A stretch of DNA of 64,000 nucleotides. Origin: Malacoraja senta (taxonomy: Eukaryota). The DNA lies in assembly GCA_038087875.1 (NCBI GenBank), contig CM075978.1, positions 180,234,001 to 180,298,000 on the forward strand, in the 5' to 3' direction. The translations under genes were made by a program, and so were the position numbers. Below, one piece after another: positions 3,231 through 44,500 of this stretch (position 1 is the stretch's first letter; each line of letters begins with the position of its first letter). A model generated the notes under the pieces. That model did no database searches, was not told the DNA's origin, and worked only from the letters and a program-made list of their open reading frames with translations.

Positions 3231-3238
3231 TCATGTGA
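3231..3238 (+). promoter_or_regulatory. Conserved E-box TCATGTGA upstream of the leader exon
   Basis: Also at 19397-19404 and 62363-62370, and as the reverse complement TCACATGA at 41446-41453; 82-124 nt upstream of each ATG. Confidence 0.4.
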
Positions 3239-3314
3239 TTTACGGCGTCGGAATCACACGCTTCAGGCATTCTATGAAAACCTATTTCTTATGCAAACCC
3301 TTCTCTTTTGCAGT

Positions 3315-6300
3315 ATGCCGGTGAAAGCAATGGTTCGGTACATGGGTCTTCTTGCTTTGGTTTGTCAAGGTATGCTTAGTTTCTGTACCGATTTCGCTAA
3401 TCAAATCATATTTGTCAATATTTTACACTAGTATGCCACAGCAAATTAAATTTACAACGTTTCTGCAATTGCCTTACCACTATTTTCTAATTGTTTTGTA
3501 TTTGTGTATCCATTGGCTCTTTTTCTTGGTGCTGTATGTGCAACTGTTTTCGTCATATTTACTTATTTCTGCCACTGACAAAAGCAACTTCGAGCAAAGT
3601 GGAACAATTCCCCGCAATCCTGAAAGTCTCCAGAGGCAGAAATGAGTCCATGTTCTGCAAATTTCCAATATTAAAAGAAACCGCTGACGTTTCTTGGTGG
3701 AGAGGGGGCGAGAAGACATTTATGGAACCGGACAACAGAAAGCAATTCAAAGTAGACAAGGGAAGCAGTACGTTTACTTTGCTGAATGTGAGTGTCGCAG
3801 ACTTGGGGATGTATTACTGTCGAGTGAAAGATCAACTGCAACTTATCGGCAATGGAACTGGCTCCCAGCTAATTGTGTTAAGTAAGTTTCTTTGTTACGG
3901 GATATGTTCATCTGTTGCAATGTAACTAAAGCTTGCTTGTGGAGAAAATATTAATCTTATCTAGTTCTATAATTTGAATGGTTACTTCCGAGGTGAAAAT
4001 CTGAAATAAAGGGAACATACTGAAAAATATTCCATCCGTCGGTCAATATACGTGCAGCGAGAGTTCTGTTATAGTTTTGTTTTATTTACTCCGGGTTATC
4101 TTACAAAGTCATAGTGACGTTACCCTGGTTATTGCTCTTGTAAATTGGCAGGTCAATTTATATTTTGACCTCCAGCTTTTCAAATACCCAACCAAATTCA
4201 CGTTGCTCCGAATTTCCAGAAAGTTGCTAATTTCCCACCCGACAAACTTTCCCATCAACTAAAATCGGAGGAGAAATGGATCTCACAGTTTTGAGGTGGA
4301 TAATTTGGTTTACACTTTCACACTCTCCAGGAAAGTTCATGGAATGAAAAAAGAAAAAGAAGAACTACAACTGAAATTCTCCGATATTATTTCTTATTTA
4401 AAATAGATCCATGGTTATATCATCGTATAGAATAGAGCTTTGCTTGGTAATAATTTATATGGCACAAGGGAGTAAAAGGTGATATCGCTTTATTAATTAA
4501 TAATGATCGTACAATAAGATGTTATTACATCAATGAAAGAAAGTAAAAATGCTTAAAAACAAACGACATTAAGGAGATTACGCAATGAATTGACAAAAAA
4601 ATGTACAATTAACTCTCCCGCTCGCTAAATATTACTGACAGTGGCTCCAGCACAAATGGAACCATGTTCATTAATGTCTTGTTAATAAAATATATGAAAT
4701 GAGAAACAGAGTTTGCTCGGTTCATCCTTGCGTGTTTTTCGAGTAAATCGATTGTTGTCGCCGTTCTGCCATTCAGTGCAGTCCATTTTCTGTAACTACC
4801 ATATGCACATAAGAAAGAGCAAATGTTCAGAAGAAATGCGTGATTTTGAATTCAACATAAAGCACTGTCACGGAATCTTACCAAGCAATACATGTGTCAC
4901 ATTCCTTCATAATAATCGCGCGTACCCCGCGAGGCAGCAGTACTAAAGTTCACTCCATTCATGCTTTGTTTCAATTGCACTACTTATCTTGAATTCCTCC
5001 GTAAAATAATTTATAACAAAATTATAAACTCAACAAACAACCACACGAATAACAGGAGGCAACAGCAACTACTCAGCGACAATTATGTTAATTGAAATAA
5101 AATATATTTTATAGTTTCACGCTTTTTATATTGTTCCAGCTCCCCCAACTCCATTGAAAATTGTTGCTATTGAAGGAAGTGCACCGCATTTGCCGCAACT
5201 CGTGTGCAAAACGGCTGCGTTTTATCCAGAGAAATTAGAAGTTATCTGGCAAAGAAACAACGTGGAAATTTTGACCGGTATTGAAACCGTGAGAAACAGA
5301 ACAGCGGATGGATTTTATGAGGCTTCCAGTTTTTTGCACGATACGCAGCCTGCTCCAGGCAAAACTGTTTACACCTGCCTGGTATCACACATATCTCTTA
5401 CAGTCCCTGCCAGTTTCAGCTACATTGTCGAGCAAGGTAAGCCGGGAGGCATTTAACGCATACTCCAGCCGCCGAGAAATACAATCTGAACAAGGGTCTC
5501 GATCCGAAATGTCTCCCATTCCTCTCTCCAGAGATGTTGCCTGTCCCGCTGAGTTACTCCAGCTCTTTTGTGTCTATTTTCTAATACAATTAGATAGTTG
5601 TGCAAATACAAACATCCAGATCCTTTTCATATTTACTGGAACCTGCGGTGGCGGGTCCAGGGTGTCAGATCCAGAATATAGAATGCATTCTGACTTTTTA
5701 AACTGTTGTCAAACTACCGGGCGTAGTTTTGTAAAATGAAAATGAACAGTCATCTTAACTTAACCTCTGCAAAGAGCCACCGTATAATGTGATCTGTTCT
5801 ATAAATTCGTCATTACCGTACAGTGCGTGCCATGTGGCAGTCATAAAATCTTTGTGCAGAAAATATTGAACGATTGCTCTGCCTTCTTGTCTCCCGGTCC
5901 CTGTGTGTGTATTTATGTTTCACTGTTCTAATTTTTCGCCATATCCAGAAACCCCAGAAACCACGGACAAAACTCTAATTCTCGGATGTGTCGTGGGCGG
6001 ACTGTCATTTGTAGTTCTGCTTATAATTTTGACAAGATTCGCATTAAAGGCACAACGAGGTAAGAACCTTGTATAATTTTCCATTTCATACACCCGATAG
6101 AAAAGCGGTTGGTGCATTCTGAGAAGTATTGAAACAAGAATCTAGCTATTAGTTGTAAGTTAAACTACAATTATTTCCCCTGCCCTTTCGAATTATTCAA
6201 TCATCCATCGATTGTGTGTTTTTCAAACATCTATATTATTAGCGTGTTGATTTGCTTTAACGTCAAAATTTGAAGTATGAGTTATTTGGTGTAGACCTTC

Positions 6301-8583
6301 GCTTCCTCGGGTTGTGCAGATCTAACGCGGATTGTATATATGAAGGTAATGCACAACACATTACATTGTGGCGATGGTACTCCGATACGTATACGGGATT
6401 GTCGCTGCCTTCAAGGGTCCATAGGCAGTAGATGTGATTATAATCTAATACTGAACTTACATTTTCCTGACATTCAAATGTTATTCGAGATTTCTTTTTT
6501 TTCATGTAGGTATTAATGCAAACTCCGTGGAAGCAAGTCATAGCGTGGAACCGGTAGGTGAAGCTATTCTTCTTGTTTCCAAGAGGAATGGACGAGTACA
6601 GAAATTATACGATCAGCAGAGAATATATCAGTTTCATTCCATATAATTTTAGAACATTGCAGCGCAGAAGGAAACCATTTTGCTTGTCACCTCTAATATT
6701 GGAAGGGGCGCAGCGAGTAAACCTGCAGTCTCATAGTTCTGTCCTGATCAGGTTCAATCCTAATCTCCAACGGTACTGTGGGTGATTTGCATCTTATTCT
6801 TGTGTGGTTTTCGGCCGGATGCTCTACTCCCCTTATACCCCAAAGTAATGCGGATTGCTCGGTTACTTCGCTACTATAAATTGCGACCTAAGAATGAAAG
6901 TACATGAAAGTGCATAAGGGCAGACGATAAACTCGTCCCACTACCAGGTGCTCAAATAGGCCAGGTTGCCTGCGAGATACGGTGGGCACTGGGATCGCTG
7001 CATGAAATATATAGGGATGCCGGAAACGGCGACAACGGAGACTGAATAAGATGGCGGGAAGTGAGAAATTGATCGCATTTGGAGGAGATATTCTTCAAAT
7101 GAATCGCAAGCTACAATATTAATAAACAAGTTGAACACGGGCACTTTGAATCCTCTCGGGAAAGACATTCTGAGAAATATAATTGAATGCAGTTCAAATG
7201 GTATCGTGCCCTTTTTTGCAATTATTCTGTATGTTTATGTTTCAGACTCACTCTTTAAAACTACATCAGACACTCTGCTAACTGTGTTGAATATCACTTT
7301 CTAATAGGCTCGGCAAGCGTCAAGTGGAGATGCCTCTGCCTACGCAACACTAAACTTGAGTGAGGGCAAAAAAATTACCAAATATCGACGAAAGGAAGAG
7401 CATGTTGTCTATGCCGAGGTAAGGGCAAAGTATTTGCACGAAAATAATTCCAAGTAAATACCAGATGAAAGGAAATTATTTCCGTTGATTATGAAGTAAC
7501 CTTGTACGACTGTGGAAAAGCCGAAATGGCGAATTTCCAATTGTGACGTTGAAACCAAATAGAGCCGAACAACACATTCAGCTGCACGACGTCATCCCAA
7601 TGCAAAATTACCTTTATCTCTGTTCCCGGGTTTAATGTAGAATGCTGTCCAAAATTAATGGGAAATTAAGAAACAGACAAGGTAAGGAACAGCCAACCGG
7701 CTTTTCCACCCAACGGGCATATCCAGCGCCACGAAATATGAGAAATTCAGACAATGACAGGAGGAACAGATTGAAATTTGAATTCAGGAAATCCACCTTA
7801 ATAAGGGACAGGTGGCAGGAGGGCACTGGACCTCAGAGAGGTTTATTATATTATTTATAGAGTACTATGTTTACTTATTCTGTTGTGCTGCTGCAAGTAA
7901 GAATTTCAGAGTTCTATCTGGGACATATGACAAGCACTGTTGACAGTGTTTCCCTATTATCTAACAAAGATCACACAGTGAGAGAGATATTATGGCTTCT
8001 CCTCGTATATCCAGCCACAAGGTAAAACAAATTCTGGCCTTATGTGCTGTCATTTTGAACGTTATTTATTACATCCTCGCGGGTTTCCCGAGGTGCTCCG
8101 AATGTTTCGCACATCCCGAATCACGTGAGGGGTTGTAGACTAATTAGACATTTAAAATGTCCCGTGTTTAGGCAAGTGGTATAATCTAGGAGTGAGCGAA
8201 GTGTTGATGGCAATGTGGAGAGAATAAAATTGAATATTTTTCATGAATATTTGTGTTACACTGTTCGCTAGACCAAGAAAGGCTCCGCGGAAGACTGGAT
8301 AAATCATATGCACATAAACTCTTATACCTTATCTGCAATCTGGAAATGATAATTGTTGGTTATATTCCAATCGTATTGAAAAATCGATTGCTTTCCTAAG
8401 TCACTGTACAATGGGTTAACAGGCAATATTGAATATATTTCACAGACCAAACGAGGCGGAGATGACAAACTGACTTACGCCTCCCTGCAGCTTTCCAACT
8501 CCAAGGAAACATCGCTATCTAAGCACAATGACAAATACTCAGTGTACGCGGGTGTAAAGGTTTCAAGGAAAGCGAGAAGTTGA
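3315..8583 (+). CDS. Gene A: SIRP-like IgSF inhibitory receptor (leader-VJ-C1-TM-4 Tyr tail), ~371 aa, 8 predicted exons
   Basis: Exons 3315-3369 (MPVKAMVRYMGLLALVCQG), 3585-3881 (V), 5140-5436 (C1), 5949-6059 (TM), 6510-6553, 7308-7429, 7970-8021, 8446-8583. All introns are GT-AG, phases are compatible, and the 1116 nt total is open to TGA at 8581. Tail motifs: SAYATL, VVYAEV, LTYASL, SVYAGV. The donor at 7430 (AA|GTATTT) is weak, so the exon 6-7 join is the least certain part. Confidence 0.8.
3585..3881 (+). CDS. Gene A IgV exon with J-like end
   Basis: ATSSKVEQFPAILKVSRGRNESMFC...SWW...TLLNVSVADLGMYYCRVKDQLQLIGNGTGSQLIVL. B-strand Cys, C-strand Trp, DxGxYYC, GxGT/S motif; 297 nt, phase 1-1, AAG acceptor, A|GTAAGT donor. 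Confidence 0.93.
5140..5436 (+). CDS. Gene A Ig C1-set exon
   Basis: PPTPLKIV...LVCKTAAFYPEKLEVIWQRN...DGFYEASSFL...YTCLVSHISL. C1 hallmarks (CxxxxFYP, W, YxCxVxH); 297 nt, phase 1-1, TTCCAG acceptor, G|GTAAGC donor. Confidence 0.92.
5949..6059 (+). CDS. Gene A transmembrane exon (uncharged core)
   Basis: ETPETTDKTLILGCVVGGLSFVVLLIILTRFALKAQR; 111 nt, phase 1-1, G|GTAAGA donor. Confidence 0.85.
7308..7429 (+). CDS. Gene A cytoplasmic exon with two tyrosine motifs
   Basis: ARQASSGDASAYATLNLSEGKKITKYRRKEEHVVYAEVRAK after a CTAATAG acceptor. Phase 0 is supplied by the 44-nt exon 6510-6553 (GINANSVEASHSVEP). Alternative donor at 7419. Confidence 0.75.
8446..8583 (+). CDS. Gene A terminal cytoplasmic exon with two ITIM-like motifs
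   Basis: TTTCACAG acceptor, then TKRGGDDKLTYASLQLSNSKETSLSKHNDKYSVYAGVKVSRKARS*. AATAAA motifs near 8787 and 8832. Confidence 0.85.
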   Translation, partial: TKRGGDDKLTYASLQLSNSKETSLSKHNDKYSVYAGVKVSRKARS

Positions 8584-9532
8584 GAAGCGAAAGACGCTTC
8601 CGTGGATTAAGAATTTATTTTTTCCACGGTCTGCACATCAAGGAGCAATGATCACAATAAAATGCACGCGCAAAGACAGTCCTTACTTTCACTTTGCATA
8701 GTGATTGGTTGTCGGAAATTGTTGTTGACCCTCTAAATGATCCGTGTTTTGATGCGGAAAGCGGAGCTAGCGGCTTAAAACCGATTAAAATAAATAAACA
8801 TGTGCTCTTGCTTATATATGTCGTTTTATTCAATAAAAAAAACTGCACATGGCAAGATATCATCAAAGCATCGCAATGTCCTCTAGTGATAACTTTTTTT
8901 CACGAAGGATGTCTCAAAGTTAATACCACGTTATGCAATTGTTTAAATATATTGTTGTTTAATCAAAACGGTTGTCAATCAGTCCTTGGCTTCACGAATG
9001 ATTCAAACGGCGCATTGTAACGTTGGTATTTCAAATTCGAAGTTCTGTAAGTGAGATCTTACGGTGAAAAGCTTTATTTTGCATGTTATCCAATGAGATT
9101 AGCTTGGAGACAGGCCGAATTCCCTCAGGCTCCTAAAAAGGCATGAGATCGATTCATGGCCTGAATAAATGGCCTAAAACCCATTCATTCCTTCTCTCCA
9201 GAGATGCCATCTGACCCGCTGACTTACTCCAGCATTTTATGTCTCCCTCCTAAAAAGGCCTAGGTGTGTCATCTTGACTGTCGCGTCAACATGGTTGGTT
9301 CAACATAGTTGGTTCACCACAGATCGTTGGTAATATAAACGCCGAGGAACTTGAAGCACATTTCACTTTGCACAATTGACGCTGTTTGGGCCATGTACTC
9401 CACCAAACTTCCTAAAGTCCATAAGTAGTTTCTTCCTCTTACTGACATTAGCGCGATTGCTTATCTATACGCCATGTTACTAAGTTCTGTATCTCCTTCG
9501 TGTGCTCCATTTCGTCATTGTTTTTTATTCAG

Positions 9533-10027: not shown

Positions 10028-11618
10028 TAAGGAGGTTGCACGGCAGTCGAGGTCACGACCCGTGACCCGTACTGTTGCCACGCAACGCATTCTGGAGTAC
10101 ACGCGGTGAACGTCAGGTAGGCACTTACTATGGCTGCCAATACAGCGGGCCCATATTCTGTTCCAGTATCCGGACTCCACGCTGACTGGTTTCACACTCG
10201 CGGACCCCCCGGGCCGTCCATCCCCGCGGCCGGGTGTGGGGGGAGGAGGTCGTGGTGCAGGTGCCGGTGCAGTGTGGTCAGTGACTCTGGGTGGGTGGAG
10301 GGACCAGACTGTCCCCAGCTCCGCTGCAGCTGACGGGGACGTTGCCGGGTGTTGGGGAGGGGGAGGTGGGGTGCGGGTAGTCGGGGTGGGGGTTGGGGTG
10401 TGGACGCGGGGGGCTGGGGATGGTCGGGGGCTTGGGGGGCGTGGGGGATGGTCGGGGCGGTCGGGGCGGTCGGTGGGGGGGGTCGGTGGGATGGGGGTCG
10501 GGGTGCCGGTGGGGGGGGGGTCGGGGTGCCGGTGCCGGTGCAGCGCGGTCAGTGATTCTGGGTGGGCGGAAGGACCAGACTGTCCCCAGCTCCGCTGCAG
10601 CTGACGGGGACGTTGCCGGGTGTTGGGGAGGGGGGGTGGGGTGCGGGTAGTCGGGTGGGGGTTGGGGTGTGGACGCGGGGGGCTGGGGATGGTCGGGGGC
10701 TTGGGGGGCGTGGGAGATGGTCGGGGCGGTCGGTGGGGGGGGGTCGGTGGGATGGGGGTCGGGGTGCCGGTGGGGGGGGGGGGTCGGGGTGCCGGTGCCG
10801 GTGCAGCGCGGTCAGTGATTCTGGGTGGGCGGAAGGACCAGACTGTCCCCAACTCTGTTGCAGCTGACGGGGCCGTTGCCGGGTGGTCGGGGGTGGGGTG
10901 TGGGGGGTGGTCGGGGGGAGGGGGTTGTTGGTCGGGGTGCCGGGGGGGGGGGGTCGGGGTGCCGGTGCCGGTGCATCTCGGTCAGTGTCTCCGGGTGGAC
11001 GGAAGCACTAGACTGTCCCCAACTCTGCTGCAGCTGACGGGGACGTTGCCGGGTGGGCGGGGGTGATCGGGGGTGGTCGGGGGGTGTGGGCGGTGGTCGG
11101 GGGGTCGGTGGGGGGTGGTGGTGGTGGTCGGGGGTGGGTGGTCGGGGGTGGACGGAAGCACCAGACTGTCCCCAACTCTGCTGCAGCTGACGGGGAAGTT
11201 GCCGGGTATTTGCCCCCATGTGTCCGTGCACGGAGCCCCGGTCACGCTCCACCGGGCCTCGTGTGTGGGCGTTGCCGACCCACAACCCGGGAGGGTGGGC
11301 GGAGGGCGGCCGTGGCCGGATAGCGCTCACCCCAGGCGGAGAGTAGGCGCTGTCCCGAGGGATGCGCTCCTTCGGCCACTTACATCTTGGTGCTCGGATT
11401 CAGAGCAAAGATACTAGAGCATTTGGATCAGAGTGCTCAGTCACCCTCCACGATTATTTACAGCGCAAAAATGGACCATTTCGGCGGTTTTTAACAGGTA
11501 AGAAAGTATTCGTTTCGTGTGTTAACAGTGTATGCAGGAGGCTGCCATGTCCTCCAGAAGGGTTGAGGTGCTACGCGCGTCACGCCCTTTGATCCGATGA
11601 TCTTATGCAACCCCCCTA
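10028..11618. mobile_element. Putative non-autonomous DNA transposon with an internal GC-rich minisatellite
   Basis: Imperfect 13-bp TIR (TAAGGAGGTTGCA / TGCAACCCCCCTA, 11/13 match). TSD not identified. Confidence 0.45.
10267..11205. repeat. GC-rich tandem array: ~83-bp core x4 plus a partial copy, with G-run spacers
   Basis: Core GTGCAGCGCGGTCAGTG...CCAGACTGTCCCCA.CTC.GCTGCAGCTGACGGGGACGTTGCCGGG at ~10267, 10538, 10801, 10971 and partially at 11149. Confidence 0.9.
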
Positions 11619-13215: not shown

Positions 13216-15214
13216 ATATTTAAGGGGTCAAGGGAGTCATGGATCAATTGTCATAAGAATCAACAATGGAACGATTACATTATTACTTGCAGCTGTGTAA
13301 CAGACCTCAATGAAGACTTCAAGCACAATAAACATAGATAATATATAATTAGTAAAATCTCAATAAACGAATCACTCCAATGCCAGTACAAAAAGCCAGA
13401 AGTCCTTCGTGCAACCAAATATAGTCTGTAGTCCATAGCTGAGGTTAGTGTTGTGTAGTGTTCAAGAGCTTGATTGCAGTTGGGAAGGATCTATTCTTGA
13501 ACCAGGCAGTCACGGGTTACAGACTTCTATTCATTCCTCCTGATGGTCGGAATGAAATGAGAGCATGGCAGGGTACTATGGGTCTTTTGGAATGATGGTT
13601 ACCTCTTTGAGGCAATACCTCCTATAGATCCCTTTGAATTGAGCAGGCCAGTATCTATGATTCACCAGGCAATGTCCACCACTCTTTGTGATCTCCTTAC
13701 TTCCTGAGCATTAGAGTTGTCGAACCAGGCTATTATTCAACAAGTAATACTCTACGAGATACATGCGTAGACGTTCAGGAGAGTATTCATACACATATTG
13801 AATTTTCGCAATCTTCTGAGGACGTAGAGGTACCCAACCTTTTTCGTCCCGTTTACCACTGGCAACTTTAATAGCACATAACAATGTTATTTCACGGCAG
13901 CCACATTACCTCTTCTTAATATGCCAATTCAACTCTTCATTTTCATGTCGCATTAGGTCATCTGTCCTAATATAAAATTATGATTATGAATACTCCAGTA
14001 AAATGTATTGTGATGTCTTCATATGCTAAAAGTACTGTGAAAAAAACAAATTGTTCTTATTCGTCACCAAGATCTGTCAAGAAAGGCGTTGGCCGACACT
14101 CCAAAAATATAGAAGCCATATTGACATTTTGAAGCCCAAGCCAAACTCTTGTTCATTGAGCATTGATAAATATATTGTAATTTTATTTTCAAATTGGTTG
14201 TGTTGTGCAGTCACAAGATAATGTACTGATGGCCGTATTGAATTGCATTCAGGGAGTAAATGAAACTGACAAGACGACTCACGTCTTTCTTCAGCATCCC
14301 AACTCCAATAAAACAGCAGTATCCACGCATAAAGGCAAAAGCGCACTTTACGCGAGTACAAATCCTTAAAGGAAAGCGAGAATTAATATTTGAAATAAAG
14401 TTTTTTGGTGCGAACCATTAGTAAGTGTAAGTCCAAAGTATTGTTTCGTTTCATTTATTGCATCCAGAGAAAACGCAGAGCTGTTACATATCAGGCCAAA
14501 TAAGAAATGCATTTCTGATCCCATTACAAATGAAAACACATTTTCTGGCTCATTTCACCACACGATCAGAAAAGATGCAGGTTTCGAATATGCATTGAAA
14601 GGAAGATTCACATTCACATTCAGTTTTCCAATCAAATTGAGCAATGTAATTTTATTGCTGGATTATCAGATCGTAGAGTTCTCACTTACCCGGTAACCCA
14701 TAAAAGGAACGCAAGCATTAAAATGCCATTTCAGTTAACGCCAACTACATAACAAGAGACCCGTGAAGCAGACAATTGTGAAATTCAGGGAATATTTCAC
14801 ATGTTTTGCACGACGTGCATATCTCTACAAACAAAGAACGGCACAGCACAGAACATGACATCTGGCCCAGGACTGTGTAAAACGTGCTTGCATTCAGAGG
14901 CATGTTATTTAGTATAAGATTTAGGTCATTATGTTGCTTCACTACTAGCCATTGGCTATGACACTCTTGAAATATTATGTTTGGTTCTGCTCACAACACT
15001 ATTGAAAGGTTTTGGTCGCGCTAGAAGAGTACAGAAGAGATTTGTTCGCGGTTTAAGATTGATGCAAAAAGCTGGTGTAACTCAGCGGGACATGCAGCAT
15101 CTCTGGAGAGAAGGAATGGGTGACGTTTCGGGTCGAGACCCTTCTTCAGACTTGTTGTGTTTATCTTCAGTTTAAACCAGCATCTGCATTTCCTTCCTAC
15201 ACATTTGTTCACGT

Positions 15215-19315: not shown

Positions 19316-19478
19316 GCATCTAAGGGAACATATCTCCTCCAGCGTACTCACGGAAGCATAAATACTGTGTACTCGAAATGCATCATGCTCCCCTAGTCAT
19401 GTGATACACCGTGTCGGATACACATACTTCAGGCATCCTATAATATCCTATTTCTTACGCAAAGCACTCATTTGCAGT

Positions 19479-22400
19479 ATGTCGGTGCAAGCAATCGTTC
19501 GGTACATAGGTCTTCTTGCTTTGCTTTGTCAAGGTATGCTTAGTTTATGTCCGATTTTGCAGAGCAAATCTTATTTTATAATATTTTACACTAGTTTGCC
19601 ACAGCAAATTAAATTTACAACGTTTCTCCAATTCCTTTACCATTGTTTCCTAATTGTTTCGTATTTTTGTATCTGTTGGCTCTTTATCTTGATGCTGTAT
19701 GTGCAACTGCTTTCATCGTATTTACTTGTTTTCTGCCACCCGCAAAAGCAACTTCGAGCAAAGTGGAACAATTCCCCGCAATCTTGAAAGTCTCCAGAGG
19801 CAGAAATGAGTCCATGTTCTGCAAATTTCCAATATTAAAAGAAACCGCTGACGTTTCTTGGTGGAGAGGGGGCGAGAAGACATTTATGGAACCGGACAAC
19901 AGAAAGCAATTCAAAGTAGACAAGGGAAGCAGTACGTTTACTTTGCTGAATGTGAGTGTCGCAGACTTGGGGATGTATTACTGTCGAGTGAAAGATCAAC
20001 TGCAACTTATCGGCAATGGAACTGGATCCCAGCTAATTGTGTTAAGTAAGTTTATTTGTTACGGGATATGTTCATCTGTTGCAGTGTCTTTGTTCCGGGA
20101 GGCGGGATATTTTTTATCTGTTGCAGTGTAACTAAAGATTGCTGGTGGGGAAAATATAAATCTTAGATCACTAGATTATGAACTGCATTAACTAGTTCCT
20201 TCCATAATTTTAATAGTTACTTGCGAGGTGGGATTTCGAAAGTAAGGGAACATGCTGAAAATATTCCACCCGTCGGTCGATATCCGCGAATGATTCTGTT
20301 ATTGTTTCGTTTTACTACGAATTTTCTTACCAATTCACATTGACATGGCCCCGGAGATTGCTCCTGTAAATTTGCAGGTCAAATTATAAACCCAACGAAA
20401 TATATGTTACTCCGAATTTCCAGAAATCTCCGTAACTACCACATGCATCTAAGAAAGAGCAAACGCTCAGAGAAATGTCTGGTTTTGAATTTTTTTTTTA
20501 AAGCTCTACTACAGGACCTTACCACGCAGTGAACCTGTCGCATCCCTTCAGAATAGTCTCGCGATTCCCACGTGGTAACAGCACGAAAGTTTCACTTTTG
20601 TGATTTGCCTCAATTATATTTGTCATCTTTATATCCACCGTAAAATAATTTATAACAAAATTATACAGTAAACAAACGACCACGCGGATAACAAGAGGTA
20701 GTGGCAACTATTCAGCGACAAATGTTCATTGTAATTAAATAAATCTTGCAATTTCACACTCATGTTTATTGTTGCAGCTCCCCCAACTCCACTGAAAATT
20801 GTTCTTTTTGAAGGAAGTGCGCCGCATTTCCCGAAACTCGTGTGTAAAACGGCGGCGTTTTATCCGGAGAAATTAGAAGTCACCTGGCAAAGAAATAACA
20901 TTGAAATTTTGACTGGTATAGAAACCGTGAGAAACAGGACTGCGGAGGGATTTTATGAGGCTTCGAGTTTTTTGCAAGATGCGCTGTCTGCTCCAGGCAA
21001 AACTATTTACACCTGCCTGGTATCACACGAATCCCTTACAGTCCCTGCAGGTTTCAGCTACGTTGTCGAGCAAGGTAAGACAGGAGGCATTTAACACACA
21101 CTGCACGGGGAATACGGTTAGATAATTGTTGAAACACTAAGGGGGGAAATCTGAATTGTATTTATACGCAGTGAAAGATTGAGTTGCTAGCTACCTATAG
21201 TTATGTAAATATCGTTTGCTCTCTCACCACTGCAAAGATAATCTTTGGAAATATATACTGACTGTCATAACTAAAGCAGTCACAAAACATTTCACAAGAA
21301 TTAAGATGTAAGATAAATCGCTAAGCTGCTCAGGGAGATGTCAGGTCAGATCACCAGTTGTGAAAAAAAGAAGCAGCGGTGAATTTCGTGGGCGAAGCTT
21401 GGCGCATCATCGTGGTAGAACAGGGAAATTCAGCCGGAGAGTGTATGAAATAAATGAACTTTTACGTACATTTTGAACTTTGGGCTAAAGTACCGGGCGC
21501 TGTGTTGTAAAAATAAATAAAATCCTTTTATCTTAATAAGCAAACCTCTTCACAATCTGCCACCGTGTGTGTGATTTGTTCCTTCAATAAATTCCAATAT
21601 TACCTTACAATTCATGGACAATGGAGGACCAGGCGTGGGGAGACCGCCGTGGAGAGGGGGAAGGGAGGAGGACAAATGGGGACCTGGCGCGGGGGTAACT
21701 TTGTAACTTTGTAAGCGCCCTTGGGTATGCAAGCAAATAATTTCACTGTGACGTGTCACATGTGACGACGAAGTATTGAATCTGTATTGAATATTTTATG
21801 CAGGGAGGGTGGATAGATACCTTAAAATGCTCTGCTTTCTTGTCTCCCTATTCCTGAATATGTGTTCCTATGGTTCACAGTATCTTATGTTTCGCCAGAT
21901 CCAGAAACCACGAACAAAACACAAATTCTTGGATGTGTAGTGGGCGGACTGTTAATTGTGATTCTGATTATATTTTTCACAAGATTCGGATTAAAGACGC
22001 AACAGGGTAAGAACGTTGCATATTTTTACCAAGTACTGCAATTTATCAGTTCTGTTCATTGATCAGAGACAGGGTACATTCTATTGCAGCGCGAAACACG
22101 ATTTCAAAGTCATTTACTGCTTGAAAATTGATAATAGCGGTCTTTCTTTCAAGAGAGAGCTAGATAGGGCTCTTCAAGAGAGAGCTAGATAGGGCTCTTA
22201 AAGATAGCGGAGTTGGGGGATATGGGGAGAAGGCAGGAACGGGGTACTGATTGTGGATGATCAGCCGTGGTCACATTGAATGGCGGTGCTGGCTCGAAGG
22301 GCCGAATGGCCTACTCCTGCACCTATTGTCTATTGTCAGTCAAACACGGAATCTGAACAGAAAATTATTTCATCTGCCCCACACCACCCTGACATCACAT

Positions 22401-24257
22401 ATAACCCTTAAAGGTTCCTTCCAGTTTCAACTATTTGGTCAAACAAGGACATGCAGGAAGCATTTTAAACGAGTTCTACATCAGATTAGAAATACAGCTG
22501 TGTAGTTGTTCAAACACGAGAGAGAGAAGTATGAATTGTATTATTTGTAGTGAAAGGCCAACGTGCAAGCTACTCAAAAACTAATACCTCATTCAATGCA
22601 TCCCGACTGAGATGAATTAACAACTTGAATTTATGTGCGGCTTATTTCATTGTAAACAATCGTGAGTATATGGGACTACGCGGCCAGATTCAGCTCAATT
22701 TCCATCTACAAATTTGCAGATGACACCACGGGTGTGGGCCGGATCGCAAACAATGGCATGTGCGTGTGTCCTTAGTTCTCGAATTCACTCTTAACCCCCT
22801 CTTTGACATTACCCATTGCTAAAATACTTCCTTGCATCTTCACCGTATCTGCACGCACGTCCTATTATGTGGATCGATGACAAATTATACTGTGTATAAT
22901 GCTTCTGCTTTTTTTTAAACTGATGTCTATTGCCTAGTGTAACAATATGAAATAAATAAATCTCTTCTTAACCTAAATCAATTATCCCCTATAGAAAGAG
23001 CTACTCTGTAACGTGACGCGTTTGCTTGATATTTAAAATTTCTATGTTTCTATGTTTCTAACCCATAATTGTTGCAATATGTATTTCCTACAATATTTTT
23101 TGGTAGGTTGGAGCGTCACTTTTCAATGCTCTGCCATTAGCTTCTACTCCCTGTATAATTAATGTCTCACGGTTTCTTATTTTTCACCTAATCCAGAAAG
23201 TACTTATAAAAGACTGATTCTCACACGTGCAGTGGGTGGATTGGTAATTTTGCTTTCGATTATAATTTTGACCAGATTAGCATGGACGGCACAACATGGT
23301 AAGCACCTTGGATTGTTCCGTTATTTCAATCCTATTTCTAGAAAAGAGAAAATATGCGTTTTTATTCGGAATTAAACAGAACGTCCATAGCATTTATCTA
23401 TTTGACAGTTGGCTATACCAGTGTAAATTGCGCCTTAAAATGCAATGATTTCACCATTCCATTCGAAGTATTCACTCCTGTCCTGAACCAATCCTTTGTG
23501 AACACCTGAGTTTATTCACCGAAATGTGTCCCTCGTGACAAAACGAGAGGAAACTGAGCGTCCGAGAGCAAAGTAACCAATTTCAATCTGTCCAAAAGGC
23601 CATGCCGGCTAATTGCAACAATCTGTGATCCGACTGACAAATGGAGGTGTATCAGTAAATTCAGAATGGGAATTTACACCGTGGGCTTGACAGATGAAAC
23701 TGGTTGCCAGCGATCAAACACAAATACATCAAAACGGCTCTGTGCAATATTAATACCACACATGGATAGTATCGTATGTGTTTAAGAATTTAACTAATCT
23801 CTCAATCTGGCCTTCAATGTCGCCTGTTTGACGTTTGTTCCTTCTCCTTATGACCCCGTGGATTTATTCCGGGTGTTCCTGTTTTCTAGCACATCCCAAA
23901 GATATGTGGAATGGTGGGTTAATTATCCCCTGTAAAATGCTCATCTGTTAGAGGACTTCTAAAATTTGGGGGCGGGGGAGAGGTTAATGACAATATGAAG
24001 CGAATAAAGTAGAATTTGGGTTAATGGGAGTTTGACGGTCGGCGCAGACTTGGATCCGCGTAATTACGACATAGTTCTGTGGACCATGATCGGCTCATGT
24101 GAAAATCGAGAAAAATATTGATATAAAATCCATATAACCTTTCTGCAAACTAAAATTGTTGAGTACCTTAGAATGTTATTGGAAAGAAAAACTATTGCTT
24201 TCCCGAGTCACTGAACGATGGACTAATGGCCGATATGAAATTACTTTCACAGACTAA
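19479..24257 (+). CDS. Gene B: paralogous leader-VJ-C1-TM receptor, predicted short-tailed activating type (~251 aa with TM2)
   Basis: Exons 19479-19533 (MSVQAIVRYIGLLALLCQG), 19749-20045 (V), 20778-21074 (C1), TM1 21899-22006 and/or TM2 23197-23298, terminal exon from 24253 (G+AC TAA). All open and GT-AG. The terminal exon choice is inferred. Confidence 0.72.
19749..20045 (+). CDS. Gene B IgV exon (protein-identical to gene A)
   Basis: Same translation as 3585-3881; only CTG>TTG and GGC>GGA differ. Confidence 0.93.
20778..21074 (+). CDS. Gene B Ig C1-set exon
   Basis: PPTPLKIVLFEGSAPHFPKLVCKTAAFYPEKLEVTWQRN...YTCLVSHESL; 297 nt, phase 1-1. Confidence 0.92.
21899..22006 (+). CDS. Gene B TM exon 1 (neutral, gene A-like)
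   Basis: DPETTNKTQILGCVVGGLLIVILIIFFTRFGLKTQQ; CGCCAG acceptor, G|GTAAGA donor, 108 nt. Confidence 0.78.
22140..22338 (+). mobile_element. CR1-type LINE 3' end between the two TM exons
   Basis: GAAGGGCCGAATGGCCTACTCCTGCACCTATTGTCTATTGTC tail; internal duplication of TCTTCAAGAGAGAGCTAGATAGGGC. Confidence 0.8.
23197..23298 (+). CDS. Gene B TM exon 2 (Arg-containing)
   Basis: ESTYKRLILTRAVGGLVILLSIIILTRLAWTAQH; ATCCAG acceptor, G|GTAAGC donor, 102 nt, phase 1-1. Not in the supplied ORF track. Confidence 0.75.
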
Positions 24258-24365
24258 AGGAGGGGGAGCCAACAAGCTGCTCCGCAGCTTCCCAACTACA
24301 ATAAAAAATCAGCAACTAAGCAAAACGGCAAACACGCAAAGGTTTCAAAGAAAGCGAGAAGTTGA
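24253..24365 (+). pseudogene. Decayed homologue of the gene A terminal ITIM exon
   Basis: Same TTTCACAG|AC(C/T)AAA start and AAAGGTTTCAA..AAAGCGAGAAGTTGA end as 8446-8583, but 25 nt shorter with both ITIM Tyr codons lost. Confidence 0.8.
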
Positions 24366-24869
24366 GAACCAACACACACTTCGTTTTTTGTGGACTATAA
24401 GGAATTACAGGTTCGAAGTATTGTTCCTTTGTATCCACTGCGTGCAGTCAAAACAACGATCGAGATCACAGGCATTATGATAAACTGCAGAAATTGTCGC
24501 TGAACATGTCAATTTACGGAGTGTTCAATGTTGAAAGCGATTGCAGTTTAAAGCGGATAGCAAAACTAAACACCTGCGCTCGTTTATTTAGGATGCTTTC
24601 AAACAACATTACAGATGGCGAGACTTCATGAACATTTCGCAACTCATTTCAAACCAAATGCCAATTAATTACATTTTAAAACGAAATAACTTTCCTTTCA
24701 TTAAATCACTTGCTTTTCCAAATCAAGCCATGGTTTATAGTTTATCAGCTGTTATGAAATGCGACTGCGTGGAGACAATCTACAGAAGGAACATTATCGC
24801 TGAACCGACAGAAGGCACATTGGAAGTCAGAGCATTTAATACAGACGTTGGGAGGCCATGTTGCAGTAG

Positions 24870-26772
24870 CATAAGAAACATAGAAACATAGAAAATAGGT
24901 ACAGGAGGAGGCCATTCGGCCCTTCGAGCCAGCACCGCCATTCATTGCGATCATGGCTGATCGTCCCCAATCAATAACCCGTGCCTGTCTTCTCCCCATA
25001 TCCCTTGATTCCACTAGCCACTAGAGGTCTATCTATCCAGCGATTTGGCCTCCACTGCCCTCTGTGGTAGGGAATTCCACAAATTCACAACTCTCTGGGT
25101 GAAAACGTTTTTTTCTCACCTCAGTCTTAAATGGCCTCCCCTTTATTCTAAGACTGTGGCCCCTGGTTCTGGACTCGCCCAACATTGGGAACATGTTTCC
25201 TGCATCTAGCTTGTCCAGTCCTTTTATAATTTTATATGTTTCTATAAGAATCCCCCCCCCCCTCATCCTTCCAAACTCAAGTGAATACCTCTTTTCAATC
25301 TTTCCTCATATGACGGGTTCGAAGTATTGTTCCTTTGTATCCATTTGATACTGTCGACCACACCATCCTAATTGACCGTCTCCGGTATGGGGTTGGTATT
25401 GATGGCACTGCCCTGAGCTGGTTCATCTCCTACCTCAAAGGTAGGAGTTTCTCGACTAACATAGGCAACTCTTTCTCCTCCCCAGCTAATCTCTGCTGTG
25501 GGGTTCCACAACGTTCCATCCATGGCCCCATTCTCTTCTCCCTGTATATGCTCCCCTTAGGCCAAGTCATTGAAAGGCACGGCATTTCCTTCCATTGCTA
25601 TGCAGACGATACACAACTCTATCTCCCCCTGAAGCCCAACAACCAATCAAATCTGTTTAACCTTACCCACTGTCTCGAGGATATAAAGTGTTGGATGGCC
25701 CAGAACTTCCTCCAACTAAACGAGAGTAAGTCTGAGGTCATCCTTCTCGGCCCCTCGGACTCAATCAAAATGATAGCAGGCAGCCTTGGAAGCCTTACCC
25801 CACTACTCAAACCTCACGTCAAAAACCTTGGTGTGATATTTGACTCAGCACTGAAATTTGACAAACAAGTCAATGCCGTGGTAAAAGCTAGCTTCTTTCA
25901 GCTTCGGACGATAGCTAAAATAAAACAATTCCTCCAGTTTGATGACCTCGAAAAGATCATCCACACATTCATCTCCTCCCGCCTAGATTACTGCAACTCC
26001 CTTTACACTGGCATCAGCCAATCTTCCCTGTCCCGCCTGCAACTGGTCCAAAACGCCGCAGCGAGACTCCTGACGGGCACCCGAAAAAGGGACCACATCA
26101 CCCCGATCCTGGCCTCTCTCCACTGTCTCCCTGTGCGGTTCCGTATAAACTTCAAGATCCTCCTCCATGTCTACAAAGCCCTCAATGGGCTTGCCCCCAT
26201 CTACATAAAAAGTCTTCTCACCCACCACTCCACCTCCAGGCCCCTCAGATCGGCCGACTTGGGGTTGCTGAAAATCCCACGGTCTAGGCATAAGCTCAGG
26301 GGCGACCGCGCCTTTGCGGTTGCAGCCCCTAGACTGTGGAACAGCATCCCCTTTCCCTTCAGAACTGCCCCCTCCATCGACTCTTTTAAGTCAAAACTAA
26401 AGACTTACCTATACTCCCAATCCTTTCCTGACGTCCTCTGAGTGAGGGCTACATGTATATATGTATGTAGTTTGTTTTGTTTGTGCTATTCTTATAACAA
26501 ATGTAAAGCACTTTGGCCAACGAGAGTTGTTTTTTAAATGTGCTATATAAATAAATGTGACTTGACCTGACTTGACTTGACTTGACAGTCCCGCCATCTC
26601 AGGGATCAATCTCCCTACGCTGCGCAGCCTCACTCACAAGGATGTCCTTCCTCAAATTAGGAGACCAAAACTGTACGCAATACTCCAGATGTGGTCTTAC
26701 CAGAGCCCTATACAACTGCAGAAGAACCTCTCTACTCCTATACTGAAATCCTCTTGTTATGAAGGCCAACAT
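24870..26772 (-). mobile_element. CR1-type LINE 3' fragment split by an L2 insertion
   Basis: CR1 text ...TCCTCATATGAC (25314) resumes as AGTCCCGCCATC (26587). Confidence 0.8.
25344..26586 (+). mobile_element. L2-clade LINE, 5'-truncated, open RT/C-terminal ORF
   Basis: FDTVDHTILIDRL...GVPQ...YADDTQLY...ISSRLDYCNSL...APRLWNSIP*, stop at 26441; (GACTT)n tail. Confidence 0.9.
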
Positions 26773-30194: not shown

Positions 30195-30499
30195 NNNNNN
30201 NNNNNNNNNNNNNNNNNNNNNNNNNNNNNNNNNNNNNNNNNNNNNNNNNNNNNNNNNNNNNNNNNNNNNNNNNNNNNNNNNNNNNNNNNNNNNNNNNNNN
30301 NNNNNNNNNNNNNNNNNNNNNNNNNNNNNNNNNNNNNNNNNNNNNNNNNNNNNNNNNNNNNNNNNNNNNNNNNNNNNNNNNNNNNNNNNNNNNNNNNNNN
30401 NNNNNNNNNNNNNNNNNNNNNNNNNNNNNNNNNNNNNNNNNNNNNNNNNNNNNNNNNNNNNNNNNNNNNNNNNNNNNNNNNNNNNNNNNNNNNNNNNNN
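30195..30499. other. Assembly gap (305 N)
   Basis: Run of N. Confidence 1.
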
Positions 30500-30853: not shown

Positions 30854-30988
30854 NNNNNNNNNNNNNNNNNNNNNNNNNNNNNNNNNNNNNNNNNNNNNNN
30901 NNNNNNNNNNNNNNNNNNNNNNNNNNNNNNNNNNNNNNNNNNNNNNNNNNNNNNNNNNNNNNNNNNNNNNNNNNNNNNNNNNNNNNNN
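30854..30988. other. Assembly gap (135 N)
   Basis: Run of N. Confidence 1.
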
Positions 30989-38280: not shown

Positions 38281-38286
38281 GGTTTA

Positions 38287-40715
38287 TAGACAATAGGTGC
38301 AGGAGTAGGCCATTCGGCCTTTCGAGTCTGCACCGCCATTCAATGTGATCATGGCTGATCATCCACAATCAGTACCCCGTTCCTGCTTTCTCCCCATACC
38401 AATCACTCCGCTGTCTTTAAGAGCTCTATGTTGAAAGCATCCAGAGAACCGGCCTCCACCACCTTCTGAGGCAGCGAATTCCACAGACCCACAACTCTCT
38501 GTGTGAAAAAGTTTTTCTTCATCTCCGTTCTAAATGGCTTAACCCTTATTCTTGAACTGTGACCCCTGGTTCTGGACTCCCCCAACAGCGGGAACATGTT
38601 TCCTGCTTCTAGCGTGTCCAAATGCTGAATAATCATATATGTGTCAATAAGACCCACTCTCATCCTTTTAAATTCCAGAGTATACAAGCTCAGACGCTCC
38701 ATTCTATCAACATATGATAATCCCGCCATCCCGGGAGTTAACCTGGTGAACCTACGCTGCACTCCCTCAACAGCAAGAATGTCCTTCTTCAAATTTGGAG
38801 ACCAAAACTGCAATCAATACTCCAGGTGTGGTCTCACTAGGGCCCTGTACAACTGCAGAAGGACCTCTTTGTTCCTATACACTCCTCTTGTTATGAAGGC
38901 CATTCGCTTTCTTCACTGCCTGCTGTACCTGCATGCTTACTTTCAGTGAATGATGTACAAGGACCCCCAGATCCCATTGTACTTCCCCTTTTCCCAACTT
39001 GACACCATTGAGATAATAATCTGCCTTCCTGTTTTTGCCACCAAAGTGGATAACCTCACATTTATCCACATTAAACTGCATCTACCATGCATCTGCCCAC
39101 TCACCCAACCTGTCCAAGTCACCTTGCATCCTCATAGCATCCTCTTCATAGTTCACACTGCCACCCAGCTTTGTGTCATCTGCAAATTTGCTAATGTTAA
39201 TTTTAATCCCATCATCAAAATCATTAATGTATATTGTAAATAGCTGCGGTCCCAGCACCGAGCCTTGCAGTACCCCTACCAGTAGTCACTGCCTACCATT
39301 CTGTAATGGACCCGTTAATCCCTACTCTTTGTTTCCTGTCTGCCAACCAATTTTCTATCCATGTCAGCACTCTACCCCCAATACCATGTGCCCTAATTTT
39401 CCCCACTAATCTCCTATGTGGGACCTTATCAAATGCTTTCTGAAAGTCCAGGTACACTATATCCACTGGCTCTCCCTTGTCCATTTTCCCAGTTACATCC
39501 CCAAAACATTCCAGAAGATTAGTCTAGCATGATTTCCCCGTCATAAATCCATGGCCAAAGTTGACTGGAAATCTACTGTTAACCAAATGTGGTGCTATTT
39601 CATCTTTTATAATTGACTCCAGCATCTTCCCCACCACCGATGTCAGGCTAACTGGTCTATAATTCCATGTTTTCTCTCTCCCGCCTTTCTTAAAAAGTGG
39701 GATAACATTAGCTACCCTCCAATCCACAGGAACTGATCCTGAATCCCTAGAACATTGGAAAATAATCACCAATGTGTCCTTGATTTCCAGAGCCACCTCC
39801 TTAAGTACCCTGGGATGCAAACCATCAGGCCCTGGGGATTTATCTGTCTTCAGTCTACCCAACACCATTTCCTGCCTAATGTGCATTTCCTTCAGTTCCT
39901 CTGCCACCCTAGATCCTCTGGCCACTGGTACATCAGGGAGATTGTTTGTGTCCTCCTTAGTGAGGAAGGGTCCAAAGTACCTGTTCAAGTCCTCTGCAAT
40001 TTCCTTGTTCCCCATAATAAATTCACCTTTCTCAGTCTTCAATGGTCCAACTTTGGTCTTAACTTTTTTTTCCTCTTCACATACCTAAATAAGCTTTTAC
40101 TATCCTCCTTTATATTCTTGGCCAGCTTACCTACGTACCTCATCTTTTCTCCCCGTATTGCCTTTTTAGTTAACTTTTGTTGCTCTTTAAACGTTTCCCA
40201 ATCCTCTGTTTCCTGCTCATCTTTGCTATGTTATATTTATTCTCTTTTATTTTTATACTGTCCCTGACTTCCATTGTCAGCCACGGTCGCCCCTTACTCC
40301 CCTTGGAATCTTTCTTCCTCTTTGGAATGAACTGATCCTGCACCTTCTGTATTATTCCCAGAAATACCTGCCATTGTTGTTCCACTGCCATCCCTGCTAG
40401 GGTATCTTTCCAGTCAACTTTGGCCAGCTCCTCCCTCATGGCTTCATAGTCCCCTTTGTTCAACTGTAATACTGACATCTCCGATTTATCCTTCTCCCTC
40501 TCAAATTGTAGATTAAAACTTATCATATTATGGTCACTACCTCCTAATGGCTCCTTTACCTCGAGTTCCCTTATCAAATACGGTTCATTACACAACACTA
40601 AATCCAGAATTGCCTTCTCCATGGTAGGCTCCAGTACAAGCTGCTCTAAGAATCCATCTCGGAGGCACTCCACAAACTCCCTTTCTTGGGGTCCAGTACC
40701 AGCAGCTGCAGCTCC
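38287..40715 (-). mobile_element. CR1-type LINE, ~2.4 kb ORF2 fragment (EN-RT-3' end), disrupted
   Basis: AILDLVLCNEP...NYRPVSLTSVVGKMLESII...VYLDFQKAFDKVPH...QFWSPNLKKDI. Confidence 0.9.
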
Positions 40716-41527: not shown

Positions 41528-44500
41528 ATGTCGTTTGGAGCATCAGTTCGATACATGATTCTTCTGGCTACAGTTTGGCATGGTACTTTTAGATACATGT
41601 GGGGTTTCCGAATCTCATGTCATGTTTTATAATATTCTATTTTTAAAAAGACACAAAGTTCTGGAGTTACTCCGTGGGTCAGGCAGCATCTAAGGAGAAC
41701 GTGGATAGGTGACGTTTCGGGTCGAAACTACTTCAGAATCTAAAGAAGACTCTTGGCCGCTGAGTTACTCCAGCACTCTGTGTCTTTTTTTGTAAACCAG
41801 TCGGTGCAGTTCCTTGTATCTCCTTAGAATATTCTATGTTGGTTACCAAGCACGAAGTTAGTTACAGTGCTTCTTAATACGTTTATGGCCGATTCTAGTT
41901 TATTTTGAATTTTTCAACTCTTTGTTCATTTTGCTTGTCCGGATGGTCAACTGTTTTCCGTATTCTTGCTTAATTTCTGGCAGCCTTCGAAGTAACTTCA
42001 ACCAAAGTGGACCAATTCCCGAAAGACCTGACCGTCCACAGAGGAGACAATGTTTCCATGTTCTGCACATTCTCAATACAACAAGTTACTCCTGATGTTT
42101 ACTGGTGGAGATGGGGCGAGAAGACATTTATAGAACCAGACAGCAGAAAACAAATTTCTACCAAAAAGGGCAGTGCGGATTTCGTTCTCCTGAATGCGAA
42201 TGTCGCGGACTCCGGGGTTTATTATTGTAAAGTGAAACATCAGCAGCAATCTATCGGAGATGGACCTGGCTCAAGGCTCACTGTGTTCGGTAAGTGCCCT
42301 GTAAGGGAGAACTTTTAATCTTCCCGGGGAACAAGTAAAGCTCGCTGATATTAATAACATGACATTTTATAACTCGGCAAAAACTCGATAAGATTTATAT
42401 TATAAAAGCAAACCGTTCCAAATCTGATATATTTAAATAATCCGTAAGTGGGTCAGCATCTGTGTAGAGACAAAATGTCATTTTCCTCATTTCGTACTTC
42501 TCCAGAGAATTTCCCATTGTTCTCCTGTAGATTCGCGCTGTCCACTTTCGCGTTATTGCCCACGATCCAGATTCACCCTTTATTACCCCCCATGGTGTGC
42601 TTGAATGTATTAAATCAAATGACTTAGATTAAACTTTTTTTCGAATTGTTTTTCATGCAAAATTGAAAATGTTGAAGCCACGTGGATGTTTTAATCTTAA
42701 TTGTGATAGGAATGTCCCATTTCTGCTCCCGAAGACAACGGAATAACACCTCCATCCTGGATAGGTTGTTTAAAACAATATTCAAACGCCACCACTCTAC
42801 GCCAATAGTGGGTACAATCTCACAAGAATAGTGTTTACAGTCCATATTGATTCACACATAATTTTCGCTTTTTACGCGCCACCTTACAAATTATCTCCGA
42901 AATCTGTAACTTTATTCACTTAAAGTCTGGAAACAAGAAAATAAATTGATCTCTCGAAATTGGGATGTTAGAATATTCATTTGGGTTAGGTATCGTGGGG
43001 TATGTGACAACAGGGTTTGTGACACAGAGACCTGACGCACAAACCACCCACGATTGAATTGAACAACGGAGCGGCCTCGGCCTTAAATATTCTACTCTTT
43101 TATTCGTCTGCTGTAAACGAAGCTGAACCCCGTATCAAACCACCATGGTTATTATACAGATGAATCCTATAAACCGTTGAGAGGTTTGATTTGCTGGATT
43201 CTTACTCCAGGGACAGAATATCACCGTCTCACTCCGAGGATTCTCATTTAAACACTTAACCTTTGTAAAATACGTGTAAGATTTAACGGCATTTGGGGCA
43301 AACGCCAGGGCACCTGTCCTTACAATTATATTTAATACATGACTCAACCCTCAATCTCTCCACGTTTCCTCCCAATTATTCATTCTACCTAAATAGATCT
43401 GTGTTCGTGCCACAGATTAATTCTACGGGCCCTTTTTTACTCGTGGACATTTTTCATCATGCTAGAAAAACGCCCCGACCTACTTGATGGCACGACCTTC
43501 TATGGCCTCCATACGACCTCCTACGACATGTCTACGACTTACCTACGACCTCGTGCCGGCCATGCTGCGAGTATGAGTCAAGGGCAAACTCGGCAGAGGT
43601 CGTGAATTAGGTCGTGAAAGTGGGACAGGGGCACTCGCCGAGGCTGAGAATAAGCATGGAGGTCTCCTCCGAGTTCAATAAAGAAACTGATTCAACAACC
43701 TGTTACTAAAGAAACGGAATGTAAAAAGATTTAAAACTAAGATGATAAACTCGTAAAGTTGTCATCAACTCGCAGAGAGATTTAACAATAGGCCTCCTAC
43801 TAGCTAGATTGTAGATCCGATTGTAGATTGCGTTCGCAATTGACCCACTCTGAGCTGATATAAGTGAAATCTTATTCAGACCAAACGTCTTCAGCAAACC
43901 GAGTACATTTGGAAAATGGCAAAATTGTAGAAGAGACGTAGTCTAAGTTTGGATTTCCCATTCGCGTATTGTACTTATTGAAGAAGCGTCTAATATTTGC
44001 ACGGCGATACTAATTATCAGTAGATAGACACAAAAAGCTGGAGTAACTCAGTGGGACAGGCAGCATCTCTGGAGAATGAATGGGTGACGTTTCGGGTCGA
44101 GACCCTTCTTCAGACATCTGCAGTTCCTTCTTAATAATTATTAGTGTAACTATCATGCCTTCAAATTGCGCAGTTAGCGTTGTGGAGAAACGTCCCGGGC
44201 CAAAAGCTGTATCACTTGAGCCCTCCATCCCAGGTACTAAACAATTGTGTGGACCAAGCTCTCTTCTATGCAACTACGGCCTGCCTCGTGATAATTGATA
44301 TTGGTGATATCTGGATATATACCGCGCTACATTGGTTAGCGCTGCCCACAACTTCAGCGACCCAAGTTCGACCCAGATCATGCGTGCGTCCATATAATAG
44401 TTCTCCCCTTCAACGCGTAGACGTTCCTCCGGTGCTCCGGTTTATTCCGCGTGCCACTGATCTGCAGGTTGGTAGGAAAACTAGCCTCTGTAAATTGTCC

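Follow-up and report, generated by a model that had tools for sequence, protein, structure and literature searches.

We found that nucleotides 24253–24365 (+ strand) of a 64,000-nt stretch of the Malacoraja senta genome (GCA_038087875.1, contig CM075978.1, 180,234,001–180,298,000, forward strand; hereafter the window) hold a terminal cytoplasmic exon that has lost both tyrosines of its ITIM-type motifs. The exon lies in a 3′ module behind gene B, one of two tandem receptor genes, the other of which, gene A, carries an intact version of it. This exon is a decayed remnant of an ITIM exon, and we consider it probable that gene B encodes a tail-less receptor by exon loss and a mismatch of splice phase, with the decay of the exon following later.

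Genes A and B and the ITIM tail of intact relatives

Genes A and B share a duplicated unit (3204–6083 and 19370–22031), and the upstream part of each consists of four exons for a leader, a V-type Ig domain with a germline J-like segment (GNGTGSQLIVL), a single C1-set domain (Pfam PF07654, E about 1e-9) and a transmembrane (TM) segment, all with canonical phase-1 splice sites. In gene B these four exons are intact: the leader, V and C1 exons (19479–19533, 19749–20045 and 20778–21074, + strand) are open throughout, and the TM1 exon (21899–22006, + strand), bounded by AG and GT with a phase-1 donor, encodes a neutral segment (LGCVVGG). The TM exon of gene A ends at 6059. The V exons of the two genes are identical at 301 of 303 nt (99.3%) and at 103 of 104 amino acids, the C1 exons at 88.9% of nucleotides, and the V exon was homogenised recently between the two genes. 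The exon structure marks the window as vertebrate DNA, and relatives in the searched collections come from sharks and rays only; the family, as we read it, is one of elasmobranch V(J)-C1-TM receptors with an ITIM tail in its intact members. A literature search found no paper on this family or on paired receptors within it.

The terminal exon of gene A (8446–8583, + strand, 138 nt) is intact and in phase 0 reads TKRGGDDKLTYASLQL...KYSVYAGVKVSRKARS-stop. It is preceded by exon 7 (7308–7418, + strand; ARQASSGDASAYATLNL...VVYAE, that is ...SAYATL...VVYAE), which ends in phase 0. Upstream cytoplasmic exons of the exon-7 type end in ..VYA[EKQ] and provide a phase-0 entry into the terminal exon, which in intact members carries two ITIM-type tyrosines, one in ..KLTYAxLQ.. 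and one in ..xVYAxV... The proximal motif, ..KLTYA[AS]LQ.., is present in gene A and in the relatives P0151, P0007, P0159, P0161 and P0152. Long-tailed relatives in Mobula, Narcine and Heterodontus without exception keep both tyrosines in their terminal exon, for which an ITIM tail is therefore ancestral.

As outgroup we used a third copy of the tail exon, an orphan (14253–14369, + strand) that retains the bases at both sites at which the gene B copy carries deletions. This relic has a preserved acceptor, His in place of the first tyrosine (TTHVFL), a disrupted distal motif (ALYAST) and an early TAA; its neighbourhood yielded no V, C1 or TM exon. A clade uniting the relic with the tail exon of gene B was rejected, as A and B agree at 38 sites across the exon and its upstream intron, against 18 and 20 sites for the alternative pairings; downstream of the tail exon, B is nearer the relic than A (60.6% versus 50% identity). 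Between gene A and the relic lies a GC-rich tandem-repeat array (10232–11207, GC 0.64) with units of about 270 bp. Further along the window are the V and C1 exons of a gene C and the V exon of a gene D that runs off the window (41989–42294, 45036–45323 and 62753–63058). For gene C, no homologue of the tail exon was found within the window, the only candidate for a downstream exon being a weak TM-like match at 48277–48360.

The 3′ module behind gene B and its tail exon

Homology between genes A and B in the duplicated unit ends near 22031. In the zone where gene B proper meets the 3′ module, a 145-bp fragment of a dispersed repeat (22189–22333, + strand) abuts a dead 3′ stump of a C1 exon (22340–22464, + strand), which is truncated, carries an internal frameshift, has lost the conserved Cys (HTTLTSH versus YTCLVSH) and shows GA in place of its donor GT. 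Other copies of the same repeat occur at 444–797, 24870–25255, 38286–38613 and 50790–51142, and copies flank the module in opposite orientation. The stump is followed by a second TM exon, TM2 (23197–23298, + strand; ESTYKRLILTRAVGGLVILLSIIILTRLAWTAQH), with AG and GT sites, a phase-1 donor and an Arg at the position where other TM exons have Cys (LTRAVGG). At the DNA level TM2 is 70% identical to the TM exon of gene A, TM1 84%, and the best protein matches of TM2 fall into a Mobula lineage (RLILERAAGG, P0160/P0161) other than that of TM1 and the TM exon of gene A. The dead stump, the end of homology, the divergence of TM2 and its different Mobula lineage together show, by sequence comparison, that the C1 stump, TM2 and the tail exon are the remains of a more divergent paralogue, a module of roughly 2 kb fused behind gene B. 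We therefore rejected the view that the tail exon is gene B's own decayed tail, since it travels with a dead C1 stump and a TM exon of another lineage. Both the stump and the tail exon carry disabling lesions in once-coding sequence, as unprocessed pseudogenes do. An earlier note, made from the same DNA, had read the locus as a step-by-step conversion of an inhibitory into an activating receptor; what we find instead is the fusion or recombination of a module, accompanied by a deletion of roughly 1.5 kb.

The homology between 24253–24365 and 8446–8583 that the earlier note had proposed was borne out by MAFFT and blastn, with the AG acceptor (24251–24252), the intron flank and the ancestral TGA stop (24363–24365) all kept. 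Alignment of 8380–8620 with 24185–24400, as well as a three-way alignment, recovered a conserved intron flank and an identical tttcacag/AC acceptor, and sensitive blastn aligned 8033–8600 with 23806–24382 (E 3e-37). Identity between A and B is 78% over the tail exon and about 63% over the upstream intron, which can be traced back to 8033/23806. Identity rises to 97% (E 2.5e-9) in a 31-bp block (8556–8586/24338–24368) that lies at the exon end and includes the old stop; outside this block the tail exons are about 75% and the introns about 63% identical. The core of the block, GGAAAGCGAGAA, also survives in the relic at 14.3 kb, and the block could be either a conserved 3′-end element or a product of local gene conversion.

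The exon of gene B is 113 nt long, compared with 138 nt in gene A, and two lesions distinguish them. The first, between 24279 and 24280, amounts to 10 bp net; it corresponds to gene A bases at about 8473–8482 and includes the Tyr codon of LTYASL (8476–8478), so that the proximal ITIM-type motif is absent from B. A deletion that removes the LTYA tyrosine had been claimed before and does exist, but its size had been given as 8 bp, whereas the exon lengths and a 10-column gap in both alignments set it at a net 10 bp. The second lesion, also anticipated in outline as the loss of the YSVYAGV tyrosine, is a 15-bp loss between 24335 and 24336 that corresponds to gene A 8539–8553 (SVYAG); the Tyr codon TAC directly before it (gene A 8536–8538) reads CAC (His) in B. 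The 15-bp loss and the preceding change from Tyr to His leave B without the distal motif, ..[AST][VLF]YA[EDG]V.., and the alignments thus confirm that both ITIM tyrosines are gone. No ITIM-type motif precedes the stop in any reading frame of the B exon. Since the relic and the long-tailed relatives keep both sites, the losses are derived and specific to the B copy. In a relative-rate test with the relic as outgroup, the B exon shows 9 point changes and the A exon 10, that is, no excess of decay in B, and a long period of neutral decay is therefore not evident.

The middle cytoplasmic exons are missing from the module. A search of 22010–24252 by blastn, tblastx and tblastn, the last with peptides of gene A and of five full-length relatives as queries, found no homologue of gene A exon 7 in gene B, as had been stated before. 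For exons 5–6, which in gene A are not definable by homology, the absence from B is indicated by the shortened intron together with negative tblastx. Intron homology is kept for about 150–190 bp after the TM exon and for about 400 bp before the tail exon; between these ends, roughly 1.8 kb of gene A correspond to about 0.3 kb in B, so that the intron is about 1.5 kb shorter. Homology at both ends only points to an internal loss that removed the middle cytoplasmic exon or exons. Upstream of the B tail exon only phase-1 donors occur, and the phase-0 entry that an exon of the exon-7 type would offer is lacking. Because even the intact terminal exon of gene A reads DQTRRR-stop in phase 1, loss of exons 5–7 would by itself put the ITIM frame out of reach, without any need for the small deletions as steps of a conversion. 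Most simply, the 10-bp and 15-bp losses arose later, by neutral decay of sequence that by then served as 3′ UTR or was dead. The step-by-step conversion proposed earlier is not supported, on two counts: (i) an order is unreadable from one sequence and (ii) the loss of exons 5–7 alone makes the ITIM frame unreachable.

Predicted products of gene B and competing readings

Entered in phase 1, the tail exon meets a TAA as its second codon (G/AC TAA, 24255–24257, + strand), at a place where gene A has CAA. Since both TM exons end in phase 1, either of them leaves the tail exon to contribute only Asp and TAA. The earlier conceptual reading, in which a phase-1 TM exon spliced at 24253 gives GAC TAA and a tail ending in ...AWTAQHD-stop, is correct provided that this splice is used. 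The conceptual products are 253 amino acids long with TM1 (…FTRFGLKTQQD) and 251 with TM2 (…LTRLAWTAQHD), and inclusion of both TM exons still keeps the frame (287 amino acids). Annotated short forms in Mobula have 253 and 258 amino acids and a neutral TM segment. The TAA at 24255–24257 is the sole stop in the phase-1 frame, which after the 10-bp loss coincides with the ancestral frame as far as the old TGA; as this frame relation has a one-in-three chance of arising, we give it no weight. A search with P0004, the V-exon ORF and the 84-amino-acid ORF of the decayed exon as queries found no predicted protein or transcript from the window or from any skate; a search of representatives gave one short-read contig fragment, P0001, resembling the C1 exon of gene A.

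Reading through the TM2 donor (23299–23390, + strand) adds 31 residues, GKHLGLFRYFNPISRKEKICVFIRN-stop, and the stop lies inside an ATTAAA (23371), a possible alternative end, by intronic polyadenylation, of a TM2 transcript. Some 1 kb beyond the decayed exon, a 368-amino-acid ORF (25335–26441, + strand) contains a reverse-transcriptase domain (PF00078, E 1.7e-12) and is probably a LINE-type retroelement.

In the mechanism that we propose, a module from a paralogue, made up of a dead C1 stump, TM2 and a tail exon, lies directly behind the leader, V, C1 and TM1 exons of gene B. About 1.5 kb is missing inside the module, where the middle cytoplasmic exons are expected; this loss would have been enough to abolish the ITIM frame. 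The tail exon has lost 10 bp and 15 bp, and with them both tyrosines, which would be later and neutral decay. Read from a phase-1 donor, it would supply Asp and TAA and then serve as 3′ UTR, and gene B would encode a receptor of about 251–253 amino acids whose cytoplasmic part is a stub of about 10 residues. Several observations count against this explanation: the searches found no transcript or predicted protein of this species, the C1 stump marks the parent gene of the module as dead, the AATAAA that follows the exon in gene A is missing in B (AATAAA occurs internally at 24300 and ATTAAA at 24700), the polypyrimidine tract of the tail-exon acceptor is weak, in A and B alike, and the counts of point changes are close to each other (9 versus 10).

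A competing reading, which we regard as somewhat unlikely, holds that birth-and-death turnover left the stump, TM2 and tail exon behind as a pseudogene fragment without expression, that the decayed exon is never read, and that gene B either terminates where TM1 is read through (…GLKTQQGKNVAYFYQVLQFISSVH-stop) or lacks function as well. The C1 stump is clearly dead, and with it the parent gene of the module, so that TM2 and the tail exon may be no more than debris; the orphan relic at 14253–14369 is a second piece of tail-exon debris in the cluster, B lacks a counterpart of the poly(A) signal of gene A, and a 34-codon TM2 exon would be open by chance with an estimated probability of about 0.2. 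Against this stand the state of TM2, with its good acceptor, open frame and consensus G/GTAAG donor, and the preserved acceptor of the tail exon. A transcript reading through from TM1 would, moreover, find neither AATAAA nor ATTAAA to end it in 22006–22700. The leader, V, C1 and TM1 exons of gene B are intact, and its V exon was recently homogenised with that of gene A, which also argues against this reading.

A further reading, which we consider unlikely, is the full model of the earlier note, in which gene B is a functional activating receptor that uses the Arg of TM2 to recruit an ITAM adaptor (e.g. FcR-gamma), ends in ...AWTAQHD and is paired with gene A. Several features fit this model. 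If the predicted splices are used, the conceptual products (...KTQQD or ...TAQHD) have a short tail without ITIM, and the ectodomain is near-identical to that of the inhibitory partner, the V domain being 99% identical to that of the neighbour. In TM2 the Arg is embedded about 5 residues deep in a hydrophobic span of 20 residues, TM1 being devoid of basic residues, and a similarly embedded Arg occurs in the short-tailed members P0014, P0053, P0068, P0100 and P0113. KIR and Ly49 provide a precedent, having gained a charged TM residue and exchanged the signalling domain by recombination (PMC2213150). The model is weakened by the neutral TM1, which comes first and is equally spliceable, and by the in-frame joining of TM1 and TM2 in a product of 287 amino acids. 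In Mobula P0161, an Arg at the same TM position coexists with a four-tyrosine tail in which three tyrosines match the ITIM consensus, and among family representatives the association between an embedded basic TM residue and loss of the ITIM is a weak trend (Fisher p = 0.067). Since P0161 combines the Arg with an ITIM tail, the Arg of TM2 is probably an old trait of its lineage and not a switch; if the P0161 lineage is the true counterpart of the module, the Arg preceded the loss of the tail.

Of the claimed conversion from inhibitory to activating receptor, the decay of the ITIM exon and the tail-less conceptual products stand, while an activating function stays putative, the neutral TM1 and the coexistence of Arg and ITIM in P0161 speaking against it. 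The gene B product may either signal through an adaptor by way of the TM2 Arg or be an inert or decoy form that uses TM1. We regard it as rather improbable that gene B is expressed and serves inhibitory gene A as an activating partner, formed by fusion with a module of TM(Arg) and tail from another family lineage and kept identical in its V exon by gene conversion. An assembly artefact or rare haplotype, with mis-joined paralogues or sequencing error behind the junction and the deletions, is very improbable: the cluster is repeat-rich and paralogous and contains N gaps (30195–30499 and 30854–30988), but no gap lies within 5 kb of the decayed exon, the lesions sit in sequence only 63–78% identical to gene A, which excludes a chimera of A, and several independent lesions (the stump, the missing exon and two deletions) agree.

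Relation to known paired receptors

Pairs of inhibitory and activating receptors are a recurring result of host–pathogen arms races, and most work on how they originated concerns mammals. Our preferred reading, a tail-less gene B produced by exon loss and phase mismatch, can be compared with several of these systems. The short-tailed KIR and Ly49 receptors derive from inhibitory homologues, with the signalling domain swapped by recombination (Abi-Rached & Parham 2005, PMC2213150), and in rat Ly49 a charged TM residue is inferred to have preceded the loss of the ITIM (PMC2213150). The skate locus resembles them in that tail-less partners would have arisen from an ITIM lineage, with a module of TM and tail exchanged and the binding domain kept, and the comparison with Mobula suggests the same Arg-first order as in rat Ly49. 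It differs in three respects. First, the skate family is an unrelated V-C1 family in a cartilaginous fish, whereas KIR and Ly49 have C2-type Ig or lectin domains. Second, the ITIM was lost here through loss of whole exons and a phase mismatch, and in KIR and Ly49 through a few point changes. Third, the activating role of gene B is putative.

Gene conversion homogenises paired receptors in Siglec-11/16 (PMC5701461) and in the CEACAM families of mammals and Xenopus (PMC2832619, PMC5112662). As in those pairs, the N-terminal Ig domains of A and B are near-identical (99.3% in the V exon) and the TM and cytoplasmic parts are divergent; opposite signalling is documented there, whereas gene B is a putative signalling partner with two candidate TM exons.

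NCBI automatic annotation names relatives of these genes 'tyrosine-protein phosphatase non-receptor type substrate 1-like'. SIRP-alpha likewise starts with a V and then a C1 domain and has a four-tyrosine tail spread over the last exons, and SIRP-beta is its short-tailed partner. The likeness to genes A and B (V-then-C1 order, four-tyrosine tail, short-tailed partner) is one of layout only, and the skate genes have one C1 domain where SIRP has two. Among solved structures, the V domain comes closest to generic I-set or short V domains, SIRP being absent from the best 60 matches, and membership in the SIRP family was rejected on the grounds of the single C1 domain and a V domain without SIRP similarity. 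The C1 domain, for its part, best matches solved constant domains of Ig heavy chain, UrIg2 (second-best) and NAR. UrIg and UrIg2 of elasmobranchs also have a germline-joined VJ followed by C1-set domains, nine C1-type domains in the case of UrIg2 (PMC12227049). The germline-joined VJ with C1-set sequence and the second-best structural match of the skate C1 domain are points of likeness; the skate genes differ in having one C1 domain and an ITIM tail, compared with nine C1-type domains and no mention of an ITIM for UrIg2 (PMC12227049). Membership in UrIg, a different multi-C1 family, was rejected as well.

Gene A, which represents the inhibitory parental form, stands here next to a tail-less gene that shares its binding domain, and the traces of the transition (the stump, the missing exons and the decayed ITIM exon) are preserved as well. 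The locus shows how simply an ITIM tail can be removed, by the loss of exons combined with a mismatch of splice phase. Were gene B indeed the expressed activating partner of gene A, the locus would represent a paired inhibitory and activating system with its molecular fossil record in a cartilaginous fish, and would place this mechanism as far back as the base of the jawed vertebrates. The receptor family itself is one for which we found no published description. If expression and adaptor pairing held, the principle of paired receptors and of module swapping would extend to cartilaginous fish; otherwise, the module would be ordinary debris of birth-and-death turnover.
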